A stretch of 64,000 nt of DNA from Iphione sp. A-MEVVRFRX5. Lineage: Eukaryota. The stretch is from contig OZ320314.1 in the NCBI GenBank assembly GCA_976226885.1, positions 95,108,001 to 95,172,000 on the forward strand. Reading direction: 5' to 3'. This document shows, piece after piece, positions 3,938 to 64,000 of this stretch (positions are counted from its first letter, which is position 1; every line of letters begins with the position of its first letter). A program made the position numbers and the translations under genes. The notes under the pieces were generated by a model that worked only from the letters and a program-made list of their open reading frames with translations, had not been told where the DNA came from and searched no databases.

Positions 3938-5269
3938 ATGGAGATCGGTGAGAGCAATCCCCCGAAAATTCCATTTGGCACGGACATGGAGACGCTGGAC
4001 GCCATGGCCGGACTACTTCCGGGCATGGAAGAAGACCCTCTGGGTCCTCCGGTCAACGCGACGATCGAGAATTTTACTGAAAACTTCATTAACACGACTT
4101 GGATCTTCGGGCCGACGGAGGACAAGGTGATCCTACCGCTGCTGCTGTCGCTCATCGCTCTGTGTGCAATGTTAGCCAACGGACTGGTTATTTTCACTGT
4201 CATCGCCTACCAGCGCCTGCGCACCGGGCCTAATCTAATGCTCTTAAACATTGCCGTCGCTGACGTGGTATTCGCCGCATTCTGCATACCAACGGCCATA
4301 GTCAATCACAGCCTCCCTCCAGCGAGCGGCGGAAGTCTCGACGGTCGCGACGGCAGCGGCGGTGACGGGATCAACGACCCGGTGGGTCCGCCTGTGGACG
4401 TAGCCGTATGTAAGTTTGTACACTACGTCATTTTCGTCACCGTCTACGTCGGTATCTATACGCTAGTGGTGACGTGCATTTTCCGTTTCTTCGCTGAGTT
4501 CCTCGCGACCAAGTTCCTGCAGCTGCTTTCTAAGACGAACGCGGCCATCACCTGCCTGGTGATCTGGCTGGCGTTTGGCGTCTCCCATCTCAACTTTGTT
4601 CTCCAGGAGGACGCCGCCATCTTCCAGGAGCCCTTCATCTGCGTGCAGACTGAAGCTCTCATAGACCAAGTCAAGATGCGCACTCTGTGGGTGACCTTCC
4701 TCGCCTGCGCCTTTCTACTGCCGCTCGTCGCCATCTTCCTCCTGTCTGCCATCACCATTCATATGCAGTCACGCGCCAACGCCAAAGCGACAGCGGCGGC
4801 CATCGCTACGGGGAGAGACCGAGGCAGCAAGGTCGGCGGCGGAAACGGAAGCACGAGCAGCCGGAGCAGTAGCGCAAGTCCCGGCAGTGGTAGGGATCCA
4901 TCCCGGAGTCAGCGTGAGTTGACAACAATGATCATGGCGTCGATGGTGGTGCGCACCGTCTGCTGGCTGCCAATCCAGGTTTTCGTCATGGTCGACATCT
5001 TTGGCGTCGTCGGCGTCACCGAACTCTACCGGAAGGCCGAGATGCTTGCCGTCTGCTGCGCCTTCGGCGGCTCGTGCATCAGCGCGCTCGTCTATAGCTG
5101 TGTCTCGGCCGACTTCCGGCTTGGCTTCCAGGAGACCGCCTCCTGTCTGCTTCCGCGGAAGGACCCCGAGAAACCGCCTCCGACGTACAAGCTTGGCGCC
5201 GAGCCAGAAGTGAACGAGACGATCATGTCAATCCTCACAGACAGTTCCAACCATATTAACTACGCTTAA
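3938..5269 (+). CDS. Intronless class A (rhodopsin-like) GPCR, allatostatin-A/galanin receptor-like
   Basis: 443-aa ORF with a good start context (AAAAAATGG) and seven hydrophobic segments. N-terminal N-glycosylation sequons NAT/NFT/NTT; TM1 'LANGLVI'; TM2 'NLMLLNIAVADVVFAAFCIP'; TM3 'VCKFVHYVIFVTVYVGIYTLV'; ECL2 Cys 'PFICVQ'; TM6 'CWLP'. TM2-TM3 closely resemble my recollection of AstA-R/galanin receptors. Confidence 0.9.
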   Translation: MEIGESNPPKIPFGTDMETLDAMAGLLPGMEEDPLGPPVNATIENFTENFINTTWIFGPTEDKVILPLLLSLIALCAMLANGLVIFTVIAYQRLRTGPNLMLLNIAVADVVFAAFCIPTAIVNHSLPPASGGSLDGRDGSGGDGINDPVGPPVDVAVCKFVHYVIFVTVYVGIYTLVVTCIFRFFAEFLATKFLQLLSKTNAAITCLVIWLAFGVSHLNFVLQEDAAIFQEPFICVQTEALIDQVKMRTLWVTFLACAFLLPLVAIFLLSAITIHMQSRANAKATAAAIATGRDRGSKVGGGNGSTSSRSSSASPGSGRDPSRSQRELTTMIMASMVVRTVCWLPIQVFVMVDIFGVVGVTELYRKAEMLAVCCAFGGSCISALVYSCVSADFRLGFQETASCLLPRKDPEKPPPTYKLGAEPEVNETIMSILTDSSNHINYA

Positions 5270-42815: not shown

Positions 42816-42827
42816 GAGAGAGACAGA

Positions 42828-42830
<3 letters not shown>

Positions 42831-42858
<28 letters not shown>
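42831..42858. repeat. (GA)n microsatellite at the 3' end of the LINE
   Basis: Direct reading. Confidence 0.95.
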
Positions 42859-42865
<7 letters not shown>

Positions 42866-43329
42866 GGGGGGAAGTCAGAGATAGGTCATGGCTATAGGTA
42901 GGGATACCATGTGAGGAGCGAGGGGGAGACACTGCAAACCAGAGGATCGGAGAAAGAGAAGAGAGACAGAGAAACAGAAGGAGAGAAACATCTGCTTAGA
43001 GCGAGTTTAGGGCATGTTTGTAACAGTACAAGGTCTAAGAGATTGTGATGAGGGGAAGAGAATACGTTTAAGATGCTTGAGAGAAAAGGATAGAGGCATG
43101 TAGGAGGAGGCATTTGGAAGTCAGAAGGGAAGGGGAGGGGAGGAAGGGAGGTATGAAGGGGTGTAGGAAAAAGAAGAGAGGCAGTAATTAAGGCTCAATT
43201 CAGAGGATTATAGAGCAAATTTGAAGGACAGAAAAGATGATATGTCCTTCTCAGTTCGAACTTCATTGACACTTTACCACTTCCTCAAACTAGACAAAAA
43301 GATCGGAAGCGACGGGAAAATAGGGAAGA

Positions 43330-46106: not shown

Positions 46107-46805
46107 CTAGACTGGGAGCGCATCCAGTGAGGGTTCCTCGAAGTTGTCTGAGATGCGTTCATCGTTCGAGATGACATTCATCTTGTAAGAAGGTGGTGGG
46201 GGCAGGGTTCGACTGAGCAAATGGCGCAGGCTGGCGATGGTGCCGGCGGTGAAAGATCTGCTCCGTCTGAATCTCCTTCCCATCATCGATCCCCAGGAGG
46301 GCAAGCCGGCAATGCTACCTCGGTAGCTGCCACTGCTGCCTCCTCCCCCTGCTCCTCCGTCTCCTTCGATACTCTCATGGCTTCGTCGGTCGACGCCAGA
46401 CGGTTTCTCCCAGTCTGTGGCTACCATGTCCTGGTGGGAAGGCAGGGACACCGAGGGCCTGAGAGACAGGTGATTCAGCTGGCTATGATCGTTGTAGTCC
46501 TTATCGGGCGTCGCTGCAACGTCGCCCCAGATGCCTGCCTTATTTTTGTGGCCCATGTCGCGGAAGCCGTCCAACAGGGTCGCCAGTCGCGCGATTGGCA
46601 CCTCGTCGTCGCCGTCTCCCGCAAGATGTCTGCCGCTGTTGGTGCTGCTGCCTCGCGGCCTCACATGGGGGCTGAGCGACTCACGCGATGCGGAGCGCAA
46701 TCGGTGAGCTTGTACCGTCCGCGACAAGACCCCTGTCCACTTGGGGTGCTCCAGGCCAACTTTCTTGAACAGCCAGTAGGTCTCCCCGATGTTTGGGTGA
46801 CCGTT
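46107..46805 (-). CDS. Terminal coding exon of the same receptor (end of the cyclase domain plus a ~220-aa low-complexity C-terminal tail)
   Basis: Polypyrimidine acceptor ttcttttctcctgcgcag|AAC at 46805 is phase 0, matching the phase-0 donor at 53447. The exon encodes 'NGHPNIGETYWLFKK'; TYWL is the conserved C-terminal motif of receptor guanylyl cyclase domains and is missing from the large exon. GC-rich, coding-like composition to the stop at 46107. Confidence 0.8.
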   Translation of the reverse strand, partial: NGHPNIGETYWLFKKVGLEHPKWTGVLSRTVQAHRLRSASRESLSPHVRPRGSSTNSGRHLAGDGDDEVPIARLATLLDGFRDMGHKNKAGIWGDVAATPDKDYNDHSQLNHLSLRPSVSLPSHQDMVATDWEKPSGVDRRSHESIEGDGGAGGGGSSGSYRGSIAGLPSWGSMMGRRFRRSRSFTAGTIASLRHLLSRTLPPPPSYKMNVISNDERISDNFEEPSLDALPV

Positions 46806-49655
46806 CTGCGCAGGAGAAAAGAAGGTGAATCTACGTGTTAAAACTTCACTACCAACGGGAAGATATTCTATGATAATTGTAAGAAAAACACACAGAATTT
46901 CCAAAGTTACAGAACAAATATATATATATGCTGAGAGTAGTTAAATATCACCCCATTTATAGCATTTATTGATATGGTATGGTAGAGATGGTCTGTGTTT
47001 TTATTCTCACCACTTCTTAGTAATAAAATAAAAAAATTTTTAATGATGTCATCAGTTTAAAAATAATTCTCAGAAAAAACGATAAAATAAAAAAAAAATT
47101 GTAATACATGTATACGCAATTTGCTTCAACAAGTTTTCCTGTAAAATAAAACAGACGAGGGGGCATTTTCTTGTTTGCAGTGAGAACAAGACCGAGAAGT
47201 ATTAGCACGCCTCCAGGCTTGATGCGTTTTCGAATATTAATACACCAAGCTCAAATCAGGAGACATTTTCCGTAGGAAGTTTCCGGTTGTGCCTAGACAT
47301 TCACATCGGCAACGATGTTCAAATATTGAACCACCTGCTACAGATTGAACCGTGTGGTGCGGTGCAGTTCTAAAGGAATTCAGAAAGTATTTATGTTTAG
47401 GCGAGTTGCATACAGCAGTACCTTTGCACGTCTAAAACAGTGAGAATTTGTTCAATCATCTCTACCCCGTAAATTGTGTTCGATGCCAAGGGTTTATTTA
47501 TATCCTTCTGTTTAGTTTCCCCATTTTCAAACCGGTCAATATGTGTTCCGGTAGGCTAGCGAAATATTGTTTGGAATGCTGTGCAAATGTTTGTCATCAA
47601 CAAAACTCTCTGATGGATGGTTATAGCAGATGTTAGTATCTATATATAAACTATAATAATATATATTTCATATATGTACGTATATGTATATATGAAGGGG
47701 GAGGATTGGAACAAGTTAAATTTGTCGCTTTGGGGGGCTGCGGTAGAAATAAAAGCAATATCAAACAGAAATATTTGCGCTCTTCGATTACGATCCACCA
47801 GGTGATGAATTAAATATCTGAGATATCATATTTCAACAAGCGTGGATCCATTGACTACATAATGTGACGTTTTGCAGCTAAAACAATGTAAGCGAGATCG
47901 ATCCAGCGGGCATTAGCTGGATTATCTAGAACCAAGTATTGTGTCACTTATACTACATTAAGATTACTGAACACTCTCTCAACCGATCAACAACGCTTAA
48001 ATACATTTTAAGTGTGTAGAAAAGTGTTCATTTCCTGATTTTGTTGCCCTAACGATAGACTCATTTTTTGAACAGTACACTGGAATGGTTTGGTAAATGC
48101 CTCACCGCCTGACCATTGCATACTAAGGCCCACTTTCCATGTGTGCATGTCAGTGTGGAAGGGTCCAGAAATTCTGCGTATTTTCCAGATGAGCATGGAC
48201 AAGCACAGGCAAGCATGGAGGATTGTTTTCCATGTAAATGGGTAAGGAACAGTCAGAAATGGCCAGGATCGGTTAGTAATGGTCAGATAGCTGCCTGGGA
48301 GAGTGTGTGTTAATACGTGTGTGCCAACTTCTGTTCAAACTGTGTGTCTTGTGCCGATTGTAAAGAATTACACCCAATTCCGTTAAGAATGTATGCCTTT
48401 TGTGCAAACCACAAAGAATTACACCAAATTTAGTTAAAACGGTTCTGATATGCAAATTACATATTCATTTACATGATCTCACATATGTTAGATAGTAATC
48501 TTTCTTATTTAAACACACATTTCTCCATTCTACTCATCTGTGTCCATAAATATGCATCTGTGTCCAGAGGAATTTATGGCCCAGGTCCGCTTTCTGTCCC
48601 CGGACAGCTCCTGACACGGAGCATGTACACCAGGAAATATTCCGAATCATCGTTACTTTTTTTCAGGAACCTGGGCTTTATGCACCCCATAAACTTTCTG
48701 TACAGATAAAAAGCAGGTCTAAATGTATATTTTTCAGGGTAATTGCTTTGTGATTGACCAGTGTACTGCCTTAAGCATATGTATGTTTTATAATTCCACC
48801 AATAGATGTACCAGTGGTATTCTCCGGGACTATTAAAAACTACAGGAAGAAATAATTTTATAGTGCTAAAAAATTGTAACAGCTTTCTCATACCCCCTAG
48901 GCCAAACCATAGCTAAAAAAGAAGTAAAATATCAATTGAAATTTAATTTACACCACAAAAACCCCATCCCGGAGAATATCTTTTGGAACATCTACTGGTG
49001 GCATCAGTCATAGGTAACATGGAATGAGGCACCAATTGTCCTATGTCTATCGATTGCATATTACTACCTGTGGATTGTGGGCCATAAGTAATCATCCAAG
49101 CTGTTTGAGCATTCTCCGGTCGACCATCAATCAATGTACTAGAGGTACCTAAGAGATACCTAAGCAACGGAGCATGGCCATGCTACTAATGTATTTACAT
49201 GTGTACATGTATTTGACTGTTAAAATGCTAATAAGGACATTATATATGTAATTCTAAGTACATAGACTTGGAATAGATTACATACTTTTCTTGAAAGTAA
49301 ATGTAATGTGCTGTGCACTTTCTTGGGATACGTGATTCGTTCCAAGCATAGCCTTCGCCTAACGACATTAACACTAAATGACTCCTGTTTGCACTCATTT
49401 TCTTGATTCGTGTATTATGCATTTGTCTACAGTGAAAACCACTGTACATGTTATGAAAACTGTTGAAGAAATGCTTGTATCTTGTATCTTGTTTGTCTAG
49501 AGACGAACAATGTGATGTTCTACCCGCATCACATGGAGACAAAACTTTTTTTTTCAAATTATACAGCCCTATTTGGATTTTTTGGGGAAAACTTCCAAGA
49601 ACATACGTTTACATTTAGGATTGATATATAAAGGTTCACTGACATTAATTATTAT

Positions 49656-52600
49656 TAGTCTAGTGGCTTAGCTAAATATTTGTGCACTTTTGGAAACAAG
49701 TATGAACATTTGCATGCAGATAAATATCACCATAGTGTTTTTTTCTAGCTATAGAAGCACTTTCAAAGTGCCCCCTGGTGGTGGGTGGCACATCCTGTAT
49801 GTACCAGATGCTTTTCTATCATATATTATGAGATAATTGGTCATTAATTTTGGTCTTAATTATTCTGACTTGATTAATTATATCTCAATGCAACATAAAG
49901 TATATGGAAAGGCTATTCCAAATATTTTTAGAAAGGAAAGTCTTTTTCATCATAATTTTGTAAAGCATGGACATCATGATGTTCCTAAATTACTGTTTTT
50001 ACAAGAATAATCCCCATGTTTTTACATAAAGTACAGATTTCAATATTAAGGCATGTTCTTGAGCACATTGCCTGAAAACTAAAAGTGCGTGATGAATTAA
50101 TTGTGATATGAAGCCTATACTTTCATTGTAAAATAGTTTTTTCTACTGTTCATACAAGAAATGTTTATGTATCTTCCAAGCACATGCATGAGCACAGTGT
50201 TGTACATAATAACTCAGCATGGAAGAATCCACAATGACCTTGGCTGCAGGATTTCTAGCATCCACATTTAATACGGTTTCTGCATCCTTTTGATGCTTCA
50301 GGTAACACTCTACAATGTGGCCCTATCTTTCATTAGTTTTGGACCATCCCACTCGGCTGGATTGGCAAGTGTCATCTGAGGAGTCATAGATTTTCCCAGA
50401 TATGACTGCTTTGGTATGTTGCCTTTCGATGTGCTCCTTGAGAGCTGCTTTATAGGAGGAAGGTTGTCATGCTTAATTCTACCTTTCCTTGTGAAAATGT
50501 CCCTCCAAGCTTTATCAATGTTGGTATGTTGACTTGTCCAGTCATATAAAAGAATGACAGTATGAGAGTTTCTTCACTCATTGTGTTGGTGTTCTTTGAC
50601 AATTCACTGAATGCAGCAGTCACCTCAGGATACACTCTCCAAACTGCCCACACTGTTTTCTCTCCTCTCCAAATAAAGGTAAAAACTGTATTGTATCCTG
50701 TGAATGCATGGTAGTGATCTGGATTGTGCAAATCCTATTACCTTTGTGATGTCATGAACTGGGAAAAAGTGAAAGGTCTTCCCAGTCCTAAAGGCTACCC
50801 ACAACTCCTTAACACCAATCCTTTCAAAGTATGCCAATCTTAGGACCAAAATATCTGTATTCACTATCCTTATTAGGATTTTCTGGCTACCCTACTTTGC
50901 TGCATAGGCTGCATTAAGTATGACCCTTTTATCTGCCTCTTTGTGATTTGGGGGTCTTAGGTATTAACAGTTAGCTGGTTGAGTACACAGGACTTTTTCT
51001 CCATCAGTGGTATACACTGCTTTTTCTGTCTCTGGCCTATCTACAACAGCATGTCAAGAAACTGAATAATTCTGTTTTGTTTTCCTCTGCACAGAGAATT
51101 TTTTCCAGTTATTAGGGATTTTGGATGTTTGAAAAACTCTCCCTCTGGTTCCCTTTCCTCTCTTTTTCCTCAAATATGCTTTCAAACTTTCAGGTATGTA
51201 GGAATCCCATACCACATCAATACATGAAGTATTCTCTAGTTGTCAGTTAATGTATGGTATAAAAACTTGGGAGGCATATTCACCAAAGGTTTGTGCTGTC
51301 CTTGGCTCCAGTAAGTGCACTACAGCTGCACCGTCCAAGATTATTGAATCCACTTTTGGAGAATCAGACACAATGCTTGTAAGATCTTCCAACCAAAGCA
51401 CAAGGTCTGACCTAGTGCCTGTGTGCAGATTTCCCTGATCTGACAAACTTTGTGAATAGGGATTTTTAGCACACTTAAAACAAATCATCAATGTTAACAG
51501 CCCTGGTTCAGCATGATGCATAATCCTGTTTTTCACAAATCTGTTTCCTTTTCGAGACAGTTTCTATCACAGAAGTATATCAACTAAATCTGTAGAATCT
51601 AAGACCAGCAGACCGGCACTTTCCTCAGTAAAGCGGTGTCCCTTTCTATTCCATAGTGGACACTACAGCTGTTACATGCGTGGCAAAAGCACTTTGTACT
51701 GCAGGGAGCTGCTCATGGTATCCAAGGTCATTGTCTGCAAGGTAAAAGAATATTGTCTCAAATTCTGTCAGTATTCTGGCCCTGCCATGATCCAATGTCT
51801 GAATGTACTAGGGTTTTCTATGAGGCCTACACCACCTTCTGAGCCTTTGAACAAGGCATTATTTAGTTCATGTCCTTGGTCAGTTGATAAACCATATGAC
51901 ATATAATTTGTTTTCTGAATTACAAAATTGCCTCTCTGAAACTCACTTTCCACTTATGGGTGGATAGCCATGGCAGGGATCTGACCTGGATTGACATGAT
52001 GTGTTGCTTTTCTGATCACTTCCATGCCATGCTTGACCATGGCAACTATGTATGCAATCTCATAAAAAATGGCATCAAGGCATTCAGTGGGACGGAGTGT
52101 TGAACTTGCTGCTAGAGCAGGGCATGATTAGCACCTTAAGACCAAAATGTCTTTTATCAACATTTTCCTTGTCCACAAAAGATATCACCGTTGCTAACCA
52201 CTTGAACCATTGCAGATATAAAGACGTTGTTTCCTGGCCAAGAAGATCTCTTTTGTGCATAGTATTGCTGAGAGGAGCATCTGTATAAATATCTGGGAGT
52301 AGCTTGACCTTTTGTTTGCCTTCCTGTGGGGTTGATGGGTCAAGCAGTGTTACACCCTTGCCAATTCCAGGGACCTCATCTGTCAGAAACTGGAAGAGGG
52401 ATTTGCTAGTTCCATGAAAGGAATCATGTGCTGTAGCAGATGTTGGGTTATGATCACAGTTATCCAAGGCTCTGACTGACAAAAACCAAGCTTCATGTTA
52501 ACAGGACAGACCACTCTTTTAGCTTCACATCCTTCACAAGTACCATTGGCTAAATTAGTGATCACTTGTAACACATGGTCATAGGACACGCTCATGCTGA

Positions 52601-53047
52601 CTTGAGACATCATGCCCACCAGCCTTTTTTTGTAAGAGTACGTAGCTGCAGCCCTATGTACAAAGACAAGGGTGTTTCGTGCTCTGGTTTATGCTTGATT
52701 TTTCCAGAAGATCAATCCCTGACATGTTTCACAGCATTGAAAAGCAACAACTGAGATTTCAAATAATACATAAACATACAATCTAAGACCTCAAATTAGT
52801 GTAAAATGACCAACATTATGGAAGGAAAACTCTTTAGCATATTAAAAGTTATGACATTTGAGCTGGTTATATGCTAAAAAAGCCCTTGCTACATATAGGT
52901 GGCACCACCTGCCACCAGCGGGCACTATGAAAGTGCTTCTATAGCTAAAACAAACCACTATGGAGATATTTATTGACATGCAAAAGTTCATACTTGTTTT
53001 CAAAAGTGCACAAATAGCCACTTTTTGGGAGCTAAGCCACTAGACTA
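49656..53047 (-). mobile_element. Academ-like (XPG/FEN1-nuclease-type) DNA transposon, internally deleted and pseudogenised
   Basis: Imperfect TIRs of about 170 bp starting TAGTCTAGTGGCTTAGCT (49656-~49823 and ~52868-53047), flanked by TAT at 49653-49655 and 53048-53050. Broken minus-strand ORFs carry 'DHNPTSATAHDSFHGTS', 'GNFVIQKT..DQGHELNN..KGSEGGVGL.ENP', 'ILDGAAVVH', 'NTDILVL..LWVAFRTGK' and 'HAFTGYNTV..GEKTVW' (XPG/H3TH-like). TAG..CTA ends, a 3-bp TSD and an XPG domain fit Academ. Confidence 0.8.
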
Positions 53048-53446
53048 TATCGAGATACTGTGAAAAGGTGTTTTTTTGTAGGAAAATGGTATTTGTTTTT
53101 TGGTAGGAAAATACTATTTGTTTTCATTAGGCTTTCGTTGTGATACATGTACATATGTGTACAAAAATGCCCGTTTTGAGAATTTGATCTTCTGTTCGTT
53201 CTTGATAGTTCTCGTCTTGGTGTGTACTGTGTGTATCTATAAGTAGGATGGGAACTCTCCCTAGTGGTTATCCCTAGTTCCAGACACGTTATGACTATTA
53301 AGTAAGGTGACCACTGGAGATAGTAGGTAGTTTAGCATATATATACGTAGCAATGTGTAACAGACTTTGACCTAGTTAGGAGAATATGTGCTGCATTAGA
53401 AATCAAATGATTATCTCACCGGAAGTGTCATTAAGACCAAACGTAC

Positions 53447-56132
53447 CTCAGCAACAGTCTCCGGATTGGCCTCCATTCTTAAGTGGTCCACTGCAAAGAT
53501 TGTCAGAGCGTCTTTGAACGCCCTGGAGACCAGCAGGTGCCCTGGATGGGAGTGTCGGAGTAGAATGTGGGCCTCCTCCAAGGCCTCGCCCATGATGTGA
53601 CAGCGAGGTTCTGTGTCCTGTACCAGGCCTGTGTAGATGGACCCATGATGCAGCACCACTCGGTACGATACTGTAGGTGGGCTAAGGGTAGATGATGAGC
53701 AGCTAGGGGTCACTGACCCTACAGAGTTATCCTCAGCTACAGTTTCTTGTCCAGGAGGCGCCATTGTGTCGACGGTTGATGCTGTAAAAGCTGTAGCAGC
53801 AGCTGGTGCGTTAGCGTCGGGCTCGTTGGTGATGATCTCGAATGCTAAGCGGGTCGCCTGGATGGCTTTACGTTTCTCCTTGCTGCCGATACCGTAGATG
53901 AGGAGGTAGACCCCGCAGGTGTAGTTAATCACTGTGCACCCGTATCGTGCAGCCACTTCTTGGATGCGTGTCTCCGACGCGTTCAACCAGTGAACCGGAC
54001 GTTCCTTCCCCTTCCTGTGCGTCGCTCTGGAGCAAGACGCTGCCCTCAGAGCCAAGATACAAACACTGGAAGTGAATTCGATCTCCCTGGTGGAATTCGA
54101 CGCAGACAGACGCTGTTGAAGAGGTGGAGGTATCCGTAGGTCAGTCAGACGAGCCACTCGTTTTTCTGCCTTCCCGAGCTGCTCTTTGCACAGTTGGAGT
54201 TGCTCTTCCAGGCCAGACGTGTACTCCTCGGACGCTTCCACCATATAGTCTAACACAGAGGACCTCTTTGGATTGTGCGCCGATTTCACCATTTTCATGA
54301 CCTGTTCGCTGGAAGGCCTAATCGTTGAATTTTCTGCCCAGCAGCACTCCATAACCTGACGAACAGCTATCGGCGTGTTTTCTCCGTGTGAGGGTCGCAA
54401 CGAGTTGCTCATGATGGCTTTGATCAAGTCACTTGGCGACATGGTATCGAAATACTCGCTGTAAGGATTGCGGCGTGTGAAGATCTCTTGTAGGATGATG
54501 GCGTAACTGTACAAATCGCATGCGGGTGATGGATGTAGATTGTTTTCTGCCCTGAGCAACTCAGGAGCCGTCCAAAAGTCGAGTACGGCGGCCGAGTCCT
54601 TGCCAACCTCATCGGGTGTCTTGCGCAGGGCAAGAAGTGGGTTTCGCTTAGGATTTAAGTGCGTGTAAAGATGGCAATACTCCCAGTCGGCAATCTTGAC
54701 CGTCCATTTGAAGTCTACGAGACAGGAGGAGGACCGGAGGTGGCCGTGTGTGATACTGTGTGAGTGCAGAAAGTAGAGTCCGTTAATGATCTCCAGTGAG
54801 ATGGCAAACTTGCACTCCTTGTTTAAAAGATACTTGTCGTCCTTTAGCAGGTCATCGAGAGGGCCTTTGGAGCAATAGTCACTGACCACATAACGGTCCC
54901 CTTGTAGCTCAGCCAGCCCGTAAAAATTGAGCACGTTGTTGTGAATTATATGGTCTCTCATTGACAGCAGCAATTTCTTTGTAGGACGAGATACATTGGC
55001 CATACTCTTTATTTCGAGCAGGCGGAGGCCGACATTGAGCCCGTTCCATTTACCAGGCCACTGCAGGATGTGTTTCAACATCTGAAAGCCGTCATCGACC
55101 TCCTCTACATCCGTCAATGACCGAATTGACGACCACATGACGAATCGCGACTTACCACTCGTTGCCGACTTCGCCGTCGTATAGAAGACTATATCCTCGA
55201 TGGGGATATCCCACTCGTCGGCGTCGAGTTTCCTGTTCCGCCGTATGTGGGAAACGGCGGCGTAAATACCGATCCCTATGACAACTAAACCGGCCATAGC
55301 GACGCCGACGATGGTAGGCATGACCCACTCCTTCCCACCACGCCTTTCCTCCTGCTCAACGCGAAGTTGTTGTTTAACGACAGGCCACAGTGGACGGCCA
55401 CCACAAGTGAGCTGGTAGAGCACCAGCTCCTCTATACGCGTGGCAATAGAGCTGCTCAGCGGGACCATGTTGTGGCGGGAGCAGACATTATCAGCGCTAT
55501 CGTCGGTGGTGAACCAATGGATGTAACGGAGCAGTTCCTCCGCCGTCGAGCAGCTCCGCATGTTCATACGGACGATCATGTAAGTGAACGTAGCGATGGG
55601 GTAGGAGTCTTTTAGTTGGTGATTGGACAGATCCACGGTCAACTCATCCTCTATGATCTCGGCTGCTTTGTCCATGGCCACCTGAACTGCCACTTGTGTC
55701 GGGCTCACCACGTTGCCGAATTGGTTCAGCATGTGCGCGTACTCCAGTCCGGCTTCTACTGCATCGGCGACTACCAGATAGCCGATGCTGTTGGGCAATG
55801 ACAGCAGCAAGCCAGCCATGCCCCGGTTCTTCTGGGCCAGATAAGCGATGACCGAGGAGTCCCAAAGTCCAGACGTGAAGGTGCCGTACCGTTGTTGCCA
55901 ACCGGCCACCGACGAGAACGCCGCCGTCACCGTCCGCGTCGTTCCCGAACTGTCGCCGCGCGCGATGACGACGATGCGCTCGCCGGGAAGCCTCACGTTT
56001 CTGTTAAGGGCCTGAAGCGCTGTGTCATTCCAGTACTCATAGGTACCATTGTAGATACCGACGGCAACATCCAACGACAGCACCAGTGATTGGTTGGTAT
56101 CTAGTTCCAGATTGTAGCCAAAGACGATGGCA
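53447..56132 (-). CDS. Large internal exon of a single-pass receptor: PstS-like ectodomain + TM + kinase-homology domain + degenerate guanylyl cyclase domain
   Basis: Lies within the 923-aa ORF 53411-56182. Acceptor ttgtctgtctcgttgcag|T at 56132 and donor GAG|gtacgt at 53447. PstS motifs 'GIYNGTYEYWND..LQALN', 'IARGDSSGTT', 'NSIGYL', 'YPIATFTYMIV'. TM 'MPTIVGVAMAGLVVIGIGIYAAV'. KHD 'HNNVLNFYG', 'GLYFLHS', 'HGHLRSSSCLVD', 'WTAPELLR', 'DLYSYAIILQEI'. Cyclase-like 'RVVLHHGSIYTGLV..EPRCHIMGE'. Confidence 0.9.
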
Positions 56133-58740
56133 CTGCAACGAGACAGACAATGTGTAGCAGGTGTGTATACTGATATTTTCAAACATGGTACAAAGCCAAC
56201 AAGAGTGAGATGAAATATACAAAGTTACAGGGAAAATAGTGTCCGGTTAGAATAATCAAATGACCTGCATGGTTGAGACCATGTGTTCCCATGTCTGTCG
56301 TGCTTAATGCAGATGAACATATGCGCAGTTGATTCCACCCATTTCCCATCTCTCCTGTTGCAACTAAAATATATTTCAATTGAGGAGAAAACATTCATTC
56401 TCACTGCGTTGCATTTCTTGCACGTTTCATGGGTAGAAATCTCAAAGAACTTATAGGATGGGTGTTAGGTTAAGAGCCAACCCATCCCTGCACGACAAGG
56501 GACAATGTAAAGATGGACGAGACAGCCTAGGGACAGAGATAGGGAGTGGTCTTCAGGGGAATTAGGAGGTGTTCAATTTAGTGAAAATTAGTAAACATAT
56601 GCATATATCTATCTGCGTGAAACATATTGTCGATATTTAATTCATAATTGGGCATTTCAAAAATAGGATTGATTAAGAGAGCATGTTATGGTTATGTTGG
56701 TCTACGGACCCCTACCGCTCATGGGCGAAAGCCTGGCTTGGACATTTTTACCAGTTTTTTACATTTTACTGTTATATGGAGACACCCTATTCAGATGCGA
56801 GCATCATGATGATGCACTTACTGATCCCTTTTAAATACACAATGTACACTGTGCATCTAGCTGCTTTCGAGTTGTTGAGGGAATTCGGGGTCTCGATCTA
56901 ATGATTCGCAATATTGACAGACATGCTCTCTTATCGCCTTTTTGATGTGCAGGGGCATCCGAGCTCGAGGATTCAAAATGGACGGGGACGATTGCAGTAG
57001 ATTGAGGATGCTCATAAAGCATTCTCCCAAAAGTTTTCATAGTCCTGTTTGGCTACAAAACGCAACGAATAGACTGACTCGGTGAACAATAGAAGGCATT
57101 TTTAGACTCAATGAGGTTCTGACAGCCACAACAAGTGTTACCAACCCGCCAGAACTACAGATAGATTTATGGCAACTCTTAATAAATCGATATTATATAG
57201 GTATTATATACATATGATAAACCCTCTGACGTCCTAATCAAATACGTCTCTAAAAACAGTACAAAAAATAACCTAAAATATTTTGCCCAAACCTGCATTC
57301 AGGGAAGTATAAGTAAACATTATCTCCTGAGTGTGACCTTAGGCTCCGACATTTGTGGCTTCTATGTGACCGCTGTAGTTAGTATAAGGCCTGCCTTCCT
57401 GCATTCGACTTGTAAAATGTATACGGGGTCTGTGCGCCAAGGTATGTTGTTCGAAGTCTGTTTCTGGATACAAACATAGAGGGGTGTTCCATGTACATTT
57501 GTACATCTGAGACAGTCACACAACAGTGCCCAAAACTCATTGAAAACTGTATTACAACAACCTATAGAACTCATGTAAACCCACAAAACAGAGCAAATAA
57601 CTCATTAGAACTGCCCAACGGTGTGGATACTTGATTAAAAGTCACACAACCGAGTAACTCACAAAATGTGTGGAAAGGTGTTTTTTCATACACACCTAAC
57701 ATGATTATTTGAAATGAAATAGAACACTACTGTCACAGTTTACGGTATACGGTGTCTGTGGTATGCAAGAAAATTTATGGATATTTCTGACAGTGGATAC
57801 ACGGACACAGACAGATAGACCGGATATCTAGAAAAGCCTGGTTCACTGTCATAATATTATATTTTTACATAGACCCATATGTAGGTTTTAGAAGATCGCA
57901 CACATGGAAACCCGTCCTAGAGGTTGTTTACTCTGAGCAATCCCTCCATTCAGTGAACTGTGTTGGCTGGGGCTTGTAAGGGCCAGAATATTATGCTAGA
58001 CTTTATCTGGAGCAGAGCAGATTCAGCTCGAGAATATCACTTAGGCTGAGCTGCCTTATCCTTTTTTTGTTATCACTACTTTGTATGTTGACTTGTTCAA
58101 CTTGACGTTCAACCTCTTCCCAAGCGGTCCTGTCGCCGCTTGACTATGCTGTGAAATAACAAGGTAGATCGGAACAGAAACTTACTCTGTACTGAGAACC
58201 TACCGGCAAACCTTGCCCTGCAAACATCAAATCACTTCAGGCTTTAAATATATGCATGCATCATTTATTCAATAATACCCATCAATCCTAAATAAATGCA
58301 TGTGAGTATATGCAGTAATATGCTCCTTTAGGTTATTAATATTTCACTATAGAGCTCTGACTAAGATCGTCCTTTCTGGAATGGTTTGCATATTTAGACC
58401 CATGTTAGAAAGACCTGATTTGCTAACTCTCCACAAGACTCAAAATTCAGGTAAAGGCGGTAAAACGGGACATGGACAATATGTAAAAAAGGAATATTTA
58501 TTCTGGCTTTTGTAAATTTTCCTCCGGCTCGAATTATCATGACGTGATTTCCTATACATCCAGGAGACTGTCGATAATACAGACCAATTTACCCTTGACA
58601 ATACCCGGGCAATTCTATGGCTAAATCCATTTCACCTAATTGTAATAACTTTGATCAGAATGAAAGCCACTCCAAGTTTATACTGGTAGAAGCATTTACA
58701 TAGATAGTAATATTACCCGCTAATGCAGTAATGTATTATT

Positions 58741-61700
58741 GTGCCACCAGAAATCGCCCTAGGGGTGCCTATATTAGTAGCTGCTCACCTTGAACCACCC
58801 CTTTCCCGCATGGCTGGTAGAGGTGAAAACATTTCGAGTGACACTACTACAGCAGGCGGATTGCACGTGCAGCGGTCACAGAGTTGGCAAGGACGAGGAA
58901 ACGCAGAAGAAAATTTCTGGCCTTGGCACTGGTCTTGAGAAGGTTCTACAGCTAATTACGAAATTAGAAGAATGCTCCGCTGAAGCCAGATGTATCGTAA
59001 CCCGCTCAAAGTCAATTCAGAAGAAAGACTCTGCTGAGAAGGGATCTTCGTCTGTTCCTTAACCTCTAGACACTGACCCCACTCAACAGGTCCGGTATTG
59101 AAGAAAATGACTCAGACGACAACAAACCTTCACCTCACCAGCTTCACACAGAGGCAGGAGAGCTTGCTGAACTGTTAGTGGCAGCAATCTATCCAACAAA
59201 CCCTTCAGTCTCTCACTTTCCGTTTCCACTATCAGTCACCAAATATATTCCTAATATGTCATTCGAGATCTCAGTACGTGGTTGGGGTCTCGATTGGCCC
59301 CTACTGGTGATGAAACATCAAGGTCTCTATTATTTTGATGTTAGTCTCCCGTTTGTGACAAGGCACTGCTCTGTGTACCTCCAAGACATATCTACATATC
59401 TAATACGGTTTTGCATGATGAACATACCTTGGCTGACAGTTGTGGCTTACTGGATGACTATATTTTTGTAATCGAAGCAGATAAAGCTTGTAGCGCCTTT
59501 CAGTCTATTACAAACATTATTAGACAATGTGATCTTATCACTGCTGACGATAAGGCCATCAAAGGCATTTGCTTGGCTTGGCATACAATTTGACATTGAA
59601 GCAGCAACAATGACTATTCCTAAAGTTAAGCTGGATAAGCTGCTCTCCATGGTTCAATACATTGTGTATAGGAAAAGGTGTACCTTCAAAAAAGTTCAAC
59701 AATTATTGAGTCTAGTAAATCATGTGGCTAGGTGCATACAGCCAGCCTGGTTATTTGTCTCGCAGATTCTTGAACAATACAGCCCTGAAATCGCGGCAGG
59801 CCATATACATGTACTAATAACAGACCAGTTTAAAAAAGACTTATACTGGTTTGTTCATTTTATCCCACAGTTCTCTGGTATGGCCCTATTTCCTAGGACC
59901 ATGTATCTCGATGAAATATTATATTGTGATGCCTCTTTGTCAGGCCTCGGGGCGTACAGCAACAAAATGTACTATGCTCTCCCCCTTTTTACCTCCATTC
60001 AAACATTTAACATCACAGAAATAACACTTATTCCAAGCAATTCTAAAAATTCATCACTTTCAATTACAGTTTGCTGTGATAATCAGGCCTCTGTTAATGC
60101 ATATAATTCAGGTTGTATAAGAGATCCGGTATTACAGGCGGCAACTCGCTCTTATGGTTTCATCAGACAAAATTCAACATTCATGTTAAATTTGTTCACA
60201 AGACAGGGGCTCAGATGGTGTACGTAGATGCTATGTACAAGGCATTAGTTGAGCAGTTCTGTATGAAGAACCCAGGCTTCTCATGCATCCATCTTCATCA
60301 TAATCTTCTTAATCATATACTTAATTCTTAACTCTTTAACTGTCATTCTGTTTGCTGATGATACAGTGATCTACACTCATGCTAAATCATGCAAGGAAGT
60401 GGCCAGCAAACTGTAGGGGGCTTGTAAGGAACTGGAGCAGTGGTGTAACTCACATAAGTTAACAATTAATGCCAGCAAATCTAAAATAATGATAATAGGA
60501 AAACAAAATTCTGATACTTATGAGCCAAGAGTGAAACTCTACAATGAAGTACTTAAAATGGTGAACAGTTACAGATACCTAGGAGTAACTATTGATAACA
60601 AACTGACTTTTAATACAGAGGCGGACATATTATTAAAACGGTTATCCATGAAAATATATTAATTCAATAAAATCAAAGGCAATGTATTATCTGGAACTGC
60701 ACTGATGCTCTATAAGTCCACCAGTCAACCACTGATAGACTATAGCACAATATATCTTACATCATGTAGAAATAAGAAACTGAGCAAAATACAAGCAATG
60801 CAAAATAGATCTCTAAGAATCATATTCAATCTTGGAAAGAAAAGAAAGTTAAGAGCCTATGAAATTCATAACAGGGATCTGCACTTGGAACTTGGAATTG
60901 GTAGCACATATGTAAGACGAACCCATATTACCATTAAAATGATGTTTAGAGCAATAAAAATTGGAGTACTTCCCCTAAAACCAAACACTATTACCAGGGA
61001 TGCTGATGGACTACTGCTGTATCAAATGATCCCAAGGAAAGAAATCTGTAGGAAGGGTATCATATATAAGGGAGCACAACTATGGAATCAACTGGATCCA
61101 CTCTTCAGAAACATAACCGACTCAACCAACTTTAATAAATTAACAATACAGACATGCTATACCTTGGCTGGACCACTCTACTGAACTCTTAGAATGTATA
61201 GAAACAACATGTGTATATAATGAATCACATTTTCCCCTCTTCATATGTAATTACTTCATCACCTGACAATATCAATTAAATTATCATGTATTGTCTTGGA
61301 AATGCATTCCTCACCATGTAAACCGTCTACTAGGACAATAGTCAGAATGAATAAAATCTATTATTATTATCATTATTAACTCTTGATTTGCAGATCCCAG
61401 GCTACAGGTGTTTGCAGCCAAGGCAGCTTGATGCCAAAGGCAAGCAGTAACTGATGCAACAGACAAAGCTCATCAGAGGATGCTGGCACTGGCCCTTGGT
61501 TTCTGTGTACATTACAACATAGACTATTCAGCAGATGAATCTTGACGATTTCCTTATATTTATAGAGTACCTCGCAAAGTATTTTACACTGGTTGTTGCC
61601 TCCCAGCACATATCTGCATTAAGGTTCTTCTTCCTACAGCTACTGCTCCAGAATAAAATTCTAAATCATGATAAGGCCCTGAAGTCTGTGCAGAAGACCT

Positions 61701-62400
61701 CCCCTGATAAGATAGATCGCAAAGATCCTATTACGCTCGAGATGCTGTTCAACATTGTTTACTTATTGGATGGAGACCACATGGTTGGTCCTGAGCTTAA
61801 AGCAATTTTTCTTCTTTCAATTTTTAGTTGTTTTGTCAATCAAATTTATTTCCTAAGGAAGGGCAGCCTTTTGATGTTAGCAGGCATTTGACTAGGGGTG
61901 ATATTATAAGTAAAGACAAGTACTTTTTGTTAAGTGGTCTAAGACAAATTCTACCACTTAAAAAAATGTATGTTCATGCTATTCCGGACTAAACATCGTG
62001 TCCCCTTGAAGCCCTTAAGTGTGTAATTAGGGCAGATCCTACAATGTCAGATGATCAGCCCCTGTTCCGACTTCCTGGTGTGACCTCGTCATTTACAATA
62101 GATGCAGTAGCAATGTACAGCATTCAAGGTCCACCTCAAGGAACTCCAGATCAACGATACCAGGTACATGCTTCACAGCTTTCTTAGGGATGGAGCGACA
62201 TTACTCCAGGCAATGGGTGTGATGGAGCAGGAGATAAGAGCACAAAGAACATGGTCTACAATCTCTTTGTCTAAGACAGGACACCTTTATGATCACTTCT
62301 CTATTGAGATAACTCCTCTAGCAGGACAAACTCGGGGAAAAAGCAAAATGTACTTCTTGCCTGATATTGCTCCTTCGATATATTTCTTACATGGTTTTTG
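58741..62400 (+). mobile_element. Tyrosine-recombinase retrotransposon (DIRS/Ngaro-like), degenerate; RT, RNase H and YR fragments
   Basis: RT 'LDWPLL..GLYYFDVSLPF' and 'LLDDYIF'. 'WLGIQFD..MTIPKVKLDK', 'KDLYWFVHFIPQFSG' and RNase H 'LYCDASLSGLGAY'. YR 'KDPITLEML', 'QPLFRLPG', 'HSFLRDGAT..MGV..IRAQRTWS'. Boundaries approximate. Confidence 0.8.
60337..61375 (+). mobile_element. 5'-truncated LINE (CR1/L2-like RT C-terminus + 3' UTR) inserted into the DIRS/Ngaro element
   Basis: 'ILFADDTVIY', 'YRYLGVTIDNKLTF' and 'LYKS..QPLIDYS' motifs. AATAAA followed by an (ATT)n tail at 61350-61376. TTAACTCTT is duplicated at 60328-60336 and 61376-61384 (TSD). Confidence 0.85.
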
Positions 62401-63379
62401 AAAGCATACTTGGTAAATACTACGACCAGTGAAGGGACTAAGACATTTTGTCAGCAACTGTTGGTGGCCCCGTTTTATGAGTAGATGCTATTGCAGCACA
62501 TACACCATTTGAAATAGTCAACTGAAGATTGAAATATCGAAACATGATTCTGTTTGCTTTGATAGGGAAACATCTACTGTAATGGGATGCGAACGGTAAA
62601 ATGAGGTAAGTCAAAATGACAGCTTATGGTTGATAATCCAGTGGCTTGACGCGTCTGCATCTTCCTCAAGTGTGACCTCCCCCCCCCCCCTCAAGGTATG
62701 TTACACCTTGATCAGGTGTGATACAATTCAGAAGATATGTGTTTCATATTATCCCTTGCTGTGACACGACCTCAAACTATAAATAAATGAAGTGCATTTT
62801 CAAGTTGAAATATGCGTTTTTTGGATTTAGGGAGCGCATCGCCCGATCCCTCGAATTGCCCTTATTTCTGCTTCCTTTCAATATTAAATTATACAGAAAA
62901 ATCCATGGAAATGTTCCAAAACACCACTGGTTGCCCTTTGAGTCCGGATGCCCACAGCATCGGTTGCAAAGCTATTCGACAAACTATTTGTCAATTTCAG
63001 TGCTGACATACCACTCGAGGTATCACCACATCAAATTTGACCTCAAAACATGACACTTTTGAAACATAAGGGCATATCAGTACGTTGTAAGTGCATTATC
63101 TCTGATATTATCTCAGCTATTGAAAGCAGTGCTGCAAGTACTAGATACCAGCTGGTGGACTAGTACCATTCTGGCAGATTCACCGGTAGCTGATTCACAT
63201 TGCAATAAACATCTTTAGGACAGATAGAGATCTCTTAAGCAACTGATGAGGTGATATCCTTGTGGAATCATAAGTTAACTGCAGTGTTATATTACATATG
63301 CGCATGGAAAACTCTACTGTCCATGCACATTTATCTTCTCTGTTCCTGTTCGCTTTCTAGCACAATCTCTTAGTATGTC

Positions 63380-63531
63380 TGTCTACCATTTCATATGTGT
63401 AAACCCTAGTGGCTGAACACTGTAGAAATTGTGATACTGTGGATGTCTCTGTGATGTCTTTGTCTACCGTTTCATGTGCGCAAACCCTAGTAACCGAACA
63501 CTGTGAGTAATTGTGATACTGTGGATGTCTT
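63380..63531. repeat. Tandem duplication, ~81-bp unit x ~1.9
   Basis: TGTCTACCRTTTCAT..AAACCCTAGT..GAACACTGT..AATTGTGATACTGTGGATGTCT starts at 63380 and at 63461. It lies upstream of an (ATTCA)n LINE-type tail near 63848-63866. Confidence 0.85.
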
Positions 63532-63936
63532 TTGCTTATATTTCTGTTGGTTGCCTGATTGCTGATTAATTGTCTGTATACCCGCTTGTAGTAGTTTTGT
63601 CTGTATGTTCCACCTGTTATGCTCGCTGTTTGCTCTGCCGTATGGATGTACCACTGCAAGCTCATATCTCTACGTGTATTATACGTTTCATGTTCAATTG
63701 TCGCCATGCACAATCCTCTGTTACTCTGCTGTTTTTGTTCATTGCATGGATGTAACATTGTATCTTGTATCTGTCCTCCATGTGTGTATATATGTTCGAT
63801 TAACCAGGAAAACTTTGTACAAGGACGAAGACTGTGGTTTATTAAGGAATTCAATTCAATTCAATTATCATTTGACTGTATCATGAAGGCGACGAAAATT
63901 ATTTGCAAAACGTTTTACAAAACGGTTTATATATTA

Positions 63937-64000
63937 CAGTGGGACCTCTCCAATCCGGACACCCTGCGTTCTTCCCCAATTCGTCCACATTGTAGAGGTG
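63937..64000. mobile_element. Start of a pogo/Tigger-like MITE, truncated by the window end
   Basis: TA followed by CAGTGGGACCTCTCCAATCCGGACACC, a typical terminus of pogo-type MITEs; the other end is outside the window. Confidence 0.5.

Follow-up and report, generated by a model that had tools for sequence, protein, structure and literature searches.

What does an animal receptor detect, and what can it do with the signal, if its extracellular part resembles a bacterial phosphate-binding protein and its cytoplasmic part a guanylyl cyclase? This question is raised by a locus on the minus strand of a stretch of 64,000 nucleotides from Iphione sp. A-MEVVRFRX5 (contig OZ320314.1, positions 95,108,001 to 95,172,000), to which we refer as the window. 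An earlier note, made from the letters of the sequence, had placed at window positions 46107-56132 a single-pass receptor in which a PstS-like ectodomain is fused to a module of the receptor-guanylyl-cyclase (RGC) type, and had proposed it as a candidate sensor of extracellular phosphate or another oxyanion. Based on homology, structural models and comparison with relatives, we consider it rather probable, though well short of certain, that the locus encodes a phosphate-binding, non-catalytic receptor of the RGC lineage, which carries a PstS clamp in place of the ANF-type ectodomain and modulates or scaffolds signalling.

The ectodomain is homologous to PstS and retains the C-terminal phosphate ligands

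The PstS-type ectodomain is encoded at 55367..56131 (minus strand) and comprises residues 1-255 of a large coding exon, equivalent to residues ~77-321 of E. coli PstS; the window carries three quarters of the PstS fold. Pfam PBP_like_2 (PF12849) matches this segment with an E-value of 1.6e-11, and the PstS equivalog model TIGR00975 matches it with an E-value of 4.4e-40 over profile positions 77-311 of 315. The score on TIGR00975 is 137.7 bits for the window fragment, which covers three quarters of the domain, versus a curated cut-off of 205 that is exceeded by the complete ectodomains of relatives (Haliotis, 212.2 bits; Owenia, 207 bits; Tubulanus, 212.2 bits). In a phmmer search against the Protein Data Bank (PDB), the ectodomain aligned to the PstS proteins of Yersinia and E. 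coli with E-values of 1e-23 to 7e-21 (6.6e-21 for E. coli 1ixh). An ANF_receptor match was not obtained in the ectodomain, where only PBP_like_2/PstS models match, which agrees with the proposal that this ectodomain differs from the ANF-receptor type.

Structure prediction was carried out with AlphaFold 2 (AF2) on the product of the large exon, using the family alignment. The window ectodomain was modelled with a predicted local distance difference test (pLDDT) value of ~93 and was superposed by Foldseek on PstS (1quk/5wnn) with a root-mean-square deviation of 2.7 Å over 251 columns. The superposition of an AlphaFold model on PstS that had been suggested as a check was made with the full ectodomain of a relative, the Haliotis protein, whose model has a mean pLDDT of 96.2; it gave TM-scores of 0.88-0.90 on PstS structures. 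When the same model was used in a fold search, the top 49 PDB matches were all phosphate binders, and the first binder of another anion, ModA, appeared at rank 50. Judged by sequence profiles and modelled fold, the ectodomain is a true PstS homolog. It is fused in one frame to a transmembrane helix and an RGC-type module, and is thus a homologous domain and no free subunit of the PstCAB transporter.

The 41-residue ectodomain string on which the phosphate assignment had first been based is present at 56059..55937 of the minus strand, within the exon of 895 open codons. It includes the ligand motif R-G-D-S-S-G-T-T (55937..55960, minus strand), which residue alignments to 1ixh and 2z22 identify as the equivalent of PstS R135, D137, S139, G140 and T141. 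In the 1ixh alignment, which also reproduces the E. coli string quoted in the earlier note, these residues are all identical between E. coli PstS and the window protein, so that the R-x-D-x-S-G-T set claimed for it is complete. We then counted conservation of the ligand positions over ~86 animal receptors of the PstS-fusion type, scoring the N-terminal positions only where that segment is present. R135 is Arg in 86/86 and G140 is Gly in 85/85 sequences; S139 is conserved as Ser in 83/86, T141 as Thr or Ser in 86/86, and D137 as Asp or Glu in 77/86. Among the N-terminal positions, T10 is Ser or Thr in 17/17, F11 is Phe in 16/17, S38 is Ser in 21/22 and D56 is Asp or Glu in 22/22 sequences. By comparison, the commonest residue has a frequency of 0.46 in the median column of the ectodomain, and a frequency of 0.9 is reached in only 12.6% of columns. 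In PstS, carboxylates of the Asp56/Asp137 type select protonated phosphate over sulfate. With its ligand residues ranking among the best conserved positions in the family, the ectodomain is strongly predicted to bind inorganic phosphate, a prediction that we regard as well founded. A conserved N-G-T sequon and two invariant Cys residues in the family ectodomain fit an extracellular domain.

The cytoplasmic module is of the RGC type by descent

The ectodomain is followed by a single transmembrane helix (55244..55327, minus strand; residues 269-296), a hydrophobic stretch that aligns with the transmembrane segment of all full-length relatives and is part of one long stalk/transmembrane helix (249-303) in the AF2 model. 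On its cytoplasmic side lie the juxtamembrane segment and kinase-homology domain (54236..55228, minus strand), which match PF07714 (PK_Tyr_Ser-Thr) with an E-value of 3.2e-28 and are modelled at pLDDT >90. A linker (dimerisation) helix follows at 54062..54235 (minus strand); it aligns to the GC-A linker and is helical at 626-666 in the AF2 model. The first 205 residues of the cyclase-homology domain (53447..54061, minus strand) complete the product of the large exon and keep the cyclase fold in the model, with pLDDT 80-88. Taken together with the exon downstream, the order of domains is PstS, transmembrane helix, kinase-homology domain, linker helix, cyclase-homology domain and a conserved tail; Pfam, the GC-A alignment and the AF2 model all bear out the order of ectodomain, transmembrane helix, kinase-homology domain and cyclase-like domain that had been read from the sequence.

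When the 598 intracellular residues were searched alone against the PDB, the best match was GC-A, co-linear over 545-902 (~360 residues) with an E-value of 4e-29, which is ten orders of magnitude better than that of the best true kinase. The GC-A alignment covers the kinase-homology domain and the linker and extends over the first half of the cyclase domain. In line with this, the AF2 model folds every domain, and its top fold match is the GC-A intracellular domain (E 1e-26), followed by kinases and PstS for the respective parts. The homology thus indicates that the cytoplasmic module is of the RGC type by descent. The kinase-homology domain is a pseudokinase, with HGH for HRD and a family-specific DWE for DFG: HGHLRSSSC of the window protein aligns with HGNLKSSNC of GC-A, and the catalytic Asp is missing in every family member, a trait common to all RGCs. 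Identity to the closest relative (P0001, 57% identical overall, a distance at which synonymous sites are saturated) is 78% in the juxtamembrane segment, 68% in the kinase-like domain and 62% in the PstS part; at 43%, the cyclase-like domain is the least conserved.

The cyclase-homology domain has lost its catalytic residues

The matches that had been expected for the spliced protein were PBP_like_2, PK_Tyr_Ser-Thr and Guanylate_cyc. The first two were obtained, whereas Guanylate_cyc (PF00211) was found only below its cut-off (E 0.0025; 17.9 versus 21.9 bits). A family profile of the cyclase-like domain, on the other hand, matched the GC-A catalytic domain with an E-value of 4.8e-47. To read the catalytic site we used as references an annelid protein from Owenia (FSDIVGFT, VETIGDAY, YCLFGDTVNTASRMES) and the GC-A alignment. 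Where Owenia, Priapulus and GC-A have D-E-D-R-C-N-R, the window protein has R-N-G-R-H-E-I. Both metal-binding Asp residues are replaced, as are the Glu and Cys that confer specificity and the Asn/Arg pair; the phosphate-contacting Arg of the LRIGIH motif is the sole residue of the set retained. The domain also contains a 47-residue low-complexity, disordered insertion (53681..53821, minus strand; residues 771-817, pLDDT <50) that corresponds to a gap in all relatives.

In class III cyclase dimers, both subunits contribute to each active site, one with the metal-binding Asp pair and the other with the specificity and Asn/Arg residues. Because both residue sets are lost, the window subunit cannot complete either active site in any pairing, and with its catalytic positions replaced it cannot make cyclic GMP (cGMP) itself. 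The cGMP-producing sensor that the earlier note had implied is therefore not what this copy encodes; going by its catalytic positions, the window protein is a member of the RGC lineage by descent and a guanylyl cyclase enzyme no longer.

Gene model and signs of constraint

The reading frame on the minus strand consists of two coding exons, 56132..53447 and 46805..46110, which are joined via canonical splice sites. The large exon (53447..56132) is probably exon 2 and extends from the second segment of PstS through most of the cyclase-homology domain; it contributes 1 leading base and 895 open codons, with the acceptor ctcgttgcag directly before 56132 and the donor GAG/gtacgt at 53447/53446. It is separated by a 6.6-kb intron (46806..53446, minus strand), which is delimited by splice sites and holds short open reading frames (ORFs) without family matches, from the last coding exon (46107..46805, minus strand), which has 232 codons (to 46110), a stop codon at 46109..46107 and the acceptor ctcctgcgcag/AAC. 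The end coordinates 46107-56132 had thus been placed correctly, at the stop codon and at the acceptor before 56132. The junction from 53447 to 46805 is in phase 0 on both sides, and the total open frame across the two exons is 1127 codons (895 + 232).

The first ~20 residues of the last exon form the final strand of the cyclase fold (GETYWL) and are followed by a Ser/Arg/Gly-rich tail. Because the opening of the exon, NGHPNIGETYWLFKK, matches the last cyclase strand of relatives (ETYWLTGR; ETYWLxGR motif), the splice is backed by homology, beyond the consensus of its sites. The tail ends in a conserved motif (46110..46295, minus strand; RSRSFT ... PSYKMNVIS ... EEPSLDxLPV-stop) and shares 72% identity over its last 65 residues with the tail encoded on the contig of the closest relative (L001), versus 43% for the cyclase-like domain. 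RSRSFT resembles a site for basophilic kinases and the tail ends in LPV; functional readings of both are speculation. The 1127 open codons and the canonical splice sites, together with a ligand site, kinase-like domain and tail that are all well conserved, argue that the gene is still under constraint. An ORF of 206 amino acids (aa) antisense to the tail exon (46221-46841, plus strand) is most likely a by-product and no gene, since this exon has a high G+C content and few stop codons on either strand.

The frame of the large exon opens inside the PstS fold, and relatives suggest where the gene begins. A relative with 49% identity (P0003, contig L002) has, 4.6 kb upstream, one exon that codes for a signal peptide and then GAGASFP ... 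IGSSRG ... AGSD ... FPTMAG (E 9e-31), in which the equivalents of T10, F11, S38 and D56 were also seen. This first exon ends GG/gtaagt, and the big exon of L002 starts A GCG GTT GTC ATT GGA TAC AAC; the big exon in the window starts T GCC ATC GTC TTT GGC TAC AAT and agrees with that of L002 in both the acceptor position and the split Gly codon. The first intron of the closest relative on L001 is also >10 kb, and no first exon was present within 10 kb upstream there. Equivalent last exons lie downstream of the big exon, at a distance of ~7 kb in L001, as in the window, and of ~4.6 kb in L002. Since L002 has an upstream exon with the same split codon and L001 shares a long first intron, we infer that exon 1 of the window gene lies past the window edge and that the gene is not truncated. 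The locus thus probably represents the last two of three coding exons of an annelid type-I membrane receptor gene.

The gene model P0191 of Priapulus caudatus begins at PstS profile position 79, where the exon boundary of the window gene also lies. This coincidence suggests that gene predictors may often miss the first exon of the family, and that the intron position may be ancient. Within the window, several medium-sized ORFs (232, 159 and 132 aa) without a Pfam match occur in the presumed first intron (59529-61184, plus strand) and in the 6.6-kb intron (50450-52620, minus strand); they are probably degraded remains of mobile elements that inflate the introns. A second copy or a tandem array was not found, as there is no further PstS, kinase-like or cyclase-like match within the window.

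Distribution of the family and catalytic status of its members

The same architecture was found in the molluscs Haliotis, Patella, Nucella, Physella, Biomphalaria, Bulinus, Liolophura, Octopus, Argonauta, Pinctada, Saccostrea, Mytilus, Argopecten and Mercenaria, in the annelids Owenia and Helobdella, in the nemertean Tubulanus and in the priapulid Priapulus. In an exhaustive profile search, the best 150 representatives included at least 55 clusters of the receptor type, at 50% identity. It had been anticipated that such fusions might already sit in databases as 'ANP receptor-like' proteins, and this name is indeed carried by relatives, next to speract receptor, gcy-like, GC-E-like and retinal GC-like. 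A full-text literature search, with most subscription journals outside its reach, returned no published description of a fusion between PstS and a receptor cyclase. A survey of the oyster kinome lists 23 RGC-group kinases, eight of them oyster-specific, and did not consider their ectodomains (PMC4883820).

We tabulated the cyclase-like domains of 60 members. The complete set of guanylyl-cyclase residues is present in ~10 (those of Owenia, Priapulus and several others), and ~47 of the 60 are degenerate, including those of all named molluscs and of the subfamily to which the window protein belongs. Its four closest relatives are likewise without the metal-binding Asp pair and the other catalytic positions; one of them, P0002, keeps only the Arg. 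Because some members keep the full canonical set, the ancestral receptor was probably a working cyclase, and catalytic loss has been common.

Some degenerate members retain parts of the catalytic set. P0005 (Haliotis), P0162, P0036, P0022 and P0018 keep both metal-binding Asp residues without Asn/Arg, P0011 keeps Asn/Arg without the Asp pair, and P0010 keeps only the Arg. By analogy with ODR-1/DAF-11, complementary half-sites of this kind could pair as asymmetric heterodimers with one working site.

An abalone protein annotated as 'PstS-like' (P0041, Haliotis cracherodii, 436 aa) was rejected as evidence for a soluble animal PstS: its sequence is almost the same as that of the P0166 receptor ectodomain, and it is for that reason probably a truncated gene model.

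Origin of the ectodomain

A phylogeny had been proposed as a test of horizontal origin. In quick, midpoint-rooted trees of the ectodomain, the animal sequences formed one clade (SH-like approximate likelihood ratio test support of 96 and 98 in two trees), and the nearest neighbours of this clade were PstS-like ectodomains of other eukaryotes, namely Chromosphaera, Fabomonas, Willaertia, Andalucia, Amoeba proteus, Palpitomonas, Entosiphon and three fungi. A branch with a support of 90 separates them from every named PstS protein of bacteria and archaea in the sample. A recent transfer from bacteria into animals was therefore ruled out, as the animal clade is nested among eukaryotic PstS-like ectodomains; a horizontal origin of recent date gained no support, and the animal sequences fall inside a pan-eukaryotic PstS-like clade.

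Several of these eukaryotic proteins are fusions as well. The top match in an exhaustive ectodomain search was P0161 of the ichthyosporean Chromosphaera perkinsii (2386 aa), with four tandem PstS domains, Ephrin-receptor-like repeats and then a TRP-like region (27.7 bits versus a cut-off of 28.5); judging by this arrangement, it might couple phosphate binding to a channel. In Fabomonas tropica, P0231/P0297 combine two PstS domains with a kinase domain and with an intact cyclase reading D-E-D-R-T-N-R, and in Willaertia magna, P0292 has PstS joined directly to an intact cyclase with the K..D specificity pair typical of adenylyl cyclases. The Fabomonas and Willaertia fusions resemble the window protein in combining a PstS-like ectodomain of the same eukaryotic clade with a class III cyclase domain. 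Unlike in the window protein, their cyclase residues are intact, and the Fabomonas protein differs further in its two PstS domains and a stronger kinase match.

Proposed mode of action and alternatives

In the mechanism that we propose, inorganic phosphate would close the PstS clamp and, as in other RGCs, the stalk and transmembrane helix would pass the movement on to a dimeric intracellular module. The output would have to be non-catalytic, because the window subunit can contribute nothing to catalysis. Most likely, the protein would serve as a phosphate-binding modulatory subunit that pairs with catalytically competent relatives and silences or tunes them; alternatively, it might act as a scaffold via its most conserved parts, which are the juxtamembrane/kinase-homology region and the C-terminal tail motif. 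Several points weigh against this model. The first exon, which would encode the signal peptide and PstS residues ~1-76 with four of the nine ligand positions, was not found in 56133..64000 when this interval and the whole window were searched by tblastn with ten relatives and with a profile hidden Markov model on the six-frame translation. No RNA sequencing run is listed for this sequence. The cyclase-like domain evolves fastest of all domains and, with its disordered insertion, could reflect simple decay. Finally, the non-catalytic mode of output is one at which we arrive by inference only.

The first two of these points, together with the degenerate cyclase domain and the transposon-like ORFs in the upstream stretch and the intron, would also be expected if the locus were a 5'-truncated or non-functional relic, whose first exon has been lost or cut off by transposon insertions and whose long frames are recent survivors. 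We regard this as improbable. A relic is difficult to reconcile with 1127 open codons in two exons with canonical, phase-matched splice sites, or with the strong conservation of ligand residues, kinase-like domain and tail motif. Moreover, the absence of a first exon within 7.9 kb upstream is weakened as an argument by the acceptor position and split codon, identical to those of a relative that does possess exon 1 (L002), and by the closest relative, which likewise combines a first intron of >10 kb with a conserved last exon.

The opposite possibility, a working phosphate-activated guanylyl cyclase that uses unconventional catalytic residues, could draw on the cyclase fold and dimerisation helix retained in the model, and on Owenia, Priapulus and several other members that keep the canonical set and probably reflect such an enzyme in the ancestor. 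We know of no class III cyclase that works without the metal-binding Asp residues, and in the window copy both of these and the other catalytic pairs are replaced, as they are, save for one Arg in P0002, in the four closest relatives. With the domain also below the Pfam cut-off and the least conserved of the protein, we consider this explanation very improbable indeed. As to the ligand, D137 is replaced in ~10% of family members, and related solute-binding folds bind other anions, as ModA in the fold search illustrates. The ectodomain might thus bind another oxyanion (arsenate, sulfate, phosphite or a phosphorylated metabolite) or be only a dimerisation or structural module. This seems unlikely to us, as the matches are specific to PstS equivalog models and above the curated cut-off for complete ectodomains, every fold match ahead of ModA is a phosphate binder, and all nine ligand positions, including both discriminating Asp residues, are far more conserved than the remaining domain.

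On a wider scale, the non-catalytic phosphate receptor of the window could belong to a protostome family (priapulids, annelids, nemerteans and molluscs) of extracellular phosphate receptors that derives from pan-eukaryotic membrane-tethered PstS sensors, in which a minority (Owenia, Priapulus) make cGMP and the majority are double pseudo-enzymes acting as brakes or scaffolds. We put this broader scheme forward tentatively, as a possibility to which we would not yet commit ourselves. The means by which animal cells detect phosphate in their surroundings are, to our knowledge, still not settled, and the family may be a candidate for how many invertebrates do so. It joins a ligand-binding domain derived from one of the best understood phosphate binders, its ligand residues conserved, to a signalling module that has itself been studied in depth. 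Members with an intact cyclase offer a simple read-out, as cGMP can be compared in the presence and absence of phosphate. Those whose cyclase is dead are natural receptors made of two pseudo-enzymes and raise the question of a non-catalytic role for receptor cyclases. Names such as 'ANP receptor-like', 'speract receptor' and 'retinal guanylyl cyclase-like' misdescribe dozens of genes in invertebrates, and PstS-like sensors occur across eukaryotes in several different fusions.

Other genes in the window

An intronless gene for a rhodopsin-family G protein-coupled receptor (GPCR) of 443 aa is located at 3938..5269 on the plus strand (7tm_1, E 1.2e-25). Its closest relatives are 68-72% identical, and its named matches are all from annelids (Lamellibrachia 'GPR54', Capitella, Ridgeia); one source labels a relative as an allatostatin receptor. 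These named matches point to an annelid genome, and a mollusc origin of the window was rejected on their account. A retroelement resembling long interspersed nuclear elements lies at 40170-42900 (plus strand) and encodes an endonuclease/exonuclease/phosphatase domain (E 2.5e-11) and a reverse transcriptase (E 3.8e-16). The region of 40-44 kb is strongly skewed in base composition, with a GC skew of about +0.27-0.30 and an AT skew of about +0.19.

Comparison with known systems

The window protein shares with GC-A/NPR1 the single-pass topology and a cytoplasmic part composed of a kinase-homology pseudokinase, a helical linker and a class III cyclase fold. It differs in having a PstS-type class II ectodomain, where GC-A has the class I ANF type, in the loss of catalytic residues, in DWE for DFG/DYG, and in its long conserved C-terminal tail. 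With bacterial PstS (1ixh), the window family has the fold and the phosphate-ligand residues in common, at ~26-28% identity to E. coli-type PstS in the structural alignment. Whereas bacterial PstS is free and feeds PstSCAB, the ectodomains of the family carry the sequon and the Cys pair and are tethered via a stalk and a transmembrane helix to a signalling module.

Among the C. elegans receptor cyclases that sense small inorganic cues, GCY receptors are direct ion sensors, and ODR-1/DAF-11 form an obligate heterodimer in which each receptor cyclase provides part of one site, so that incomplete subunits work only in heterodimers (PMC5225109). The ODR-1/DAF-11 subunits each keep half of the catalytic residues, while the window protein cannot complement a partner, and their ectodomains are not of the PstS type. 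The best functional analogy is NPR-C, a ligand-binding, non-catalytic member of the receptor family that heterodimerises with NPRA/B and can thereby suppress cGMP (PMC10334801). NPR-C is without kinase-like and cyclase domains, whereas the window protein keeps both as folded pseudo-enzymes. The Venus kinase receptors of invertebrates resemble the window protein in combining a small-molecule flytrap ectodomain, one transmembrane segment and a kinase-fold module, mainly in protostomes (PMC2680970, PMC3703292); they differ in that their flytrap is of the class I amino-acid type found in class C GPCRs, their tyrosine kinase is active, and no cyclase domain is present.

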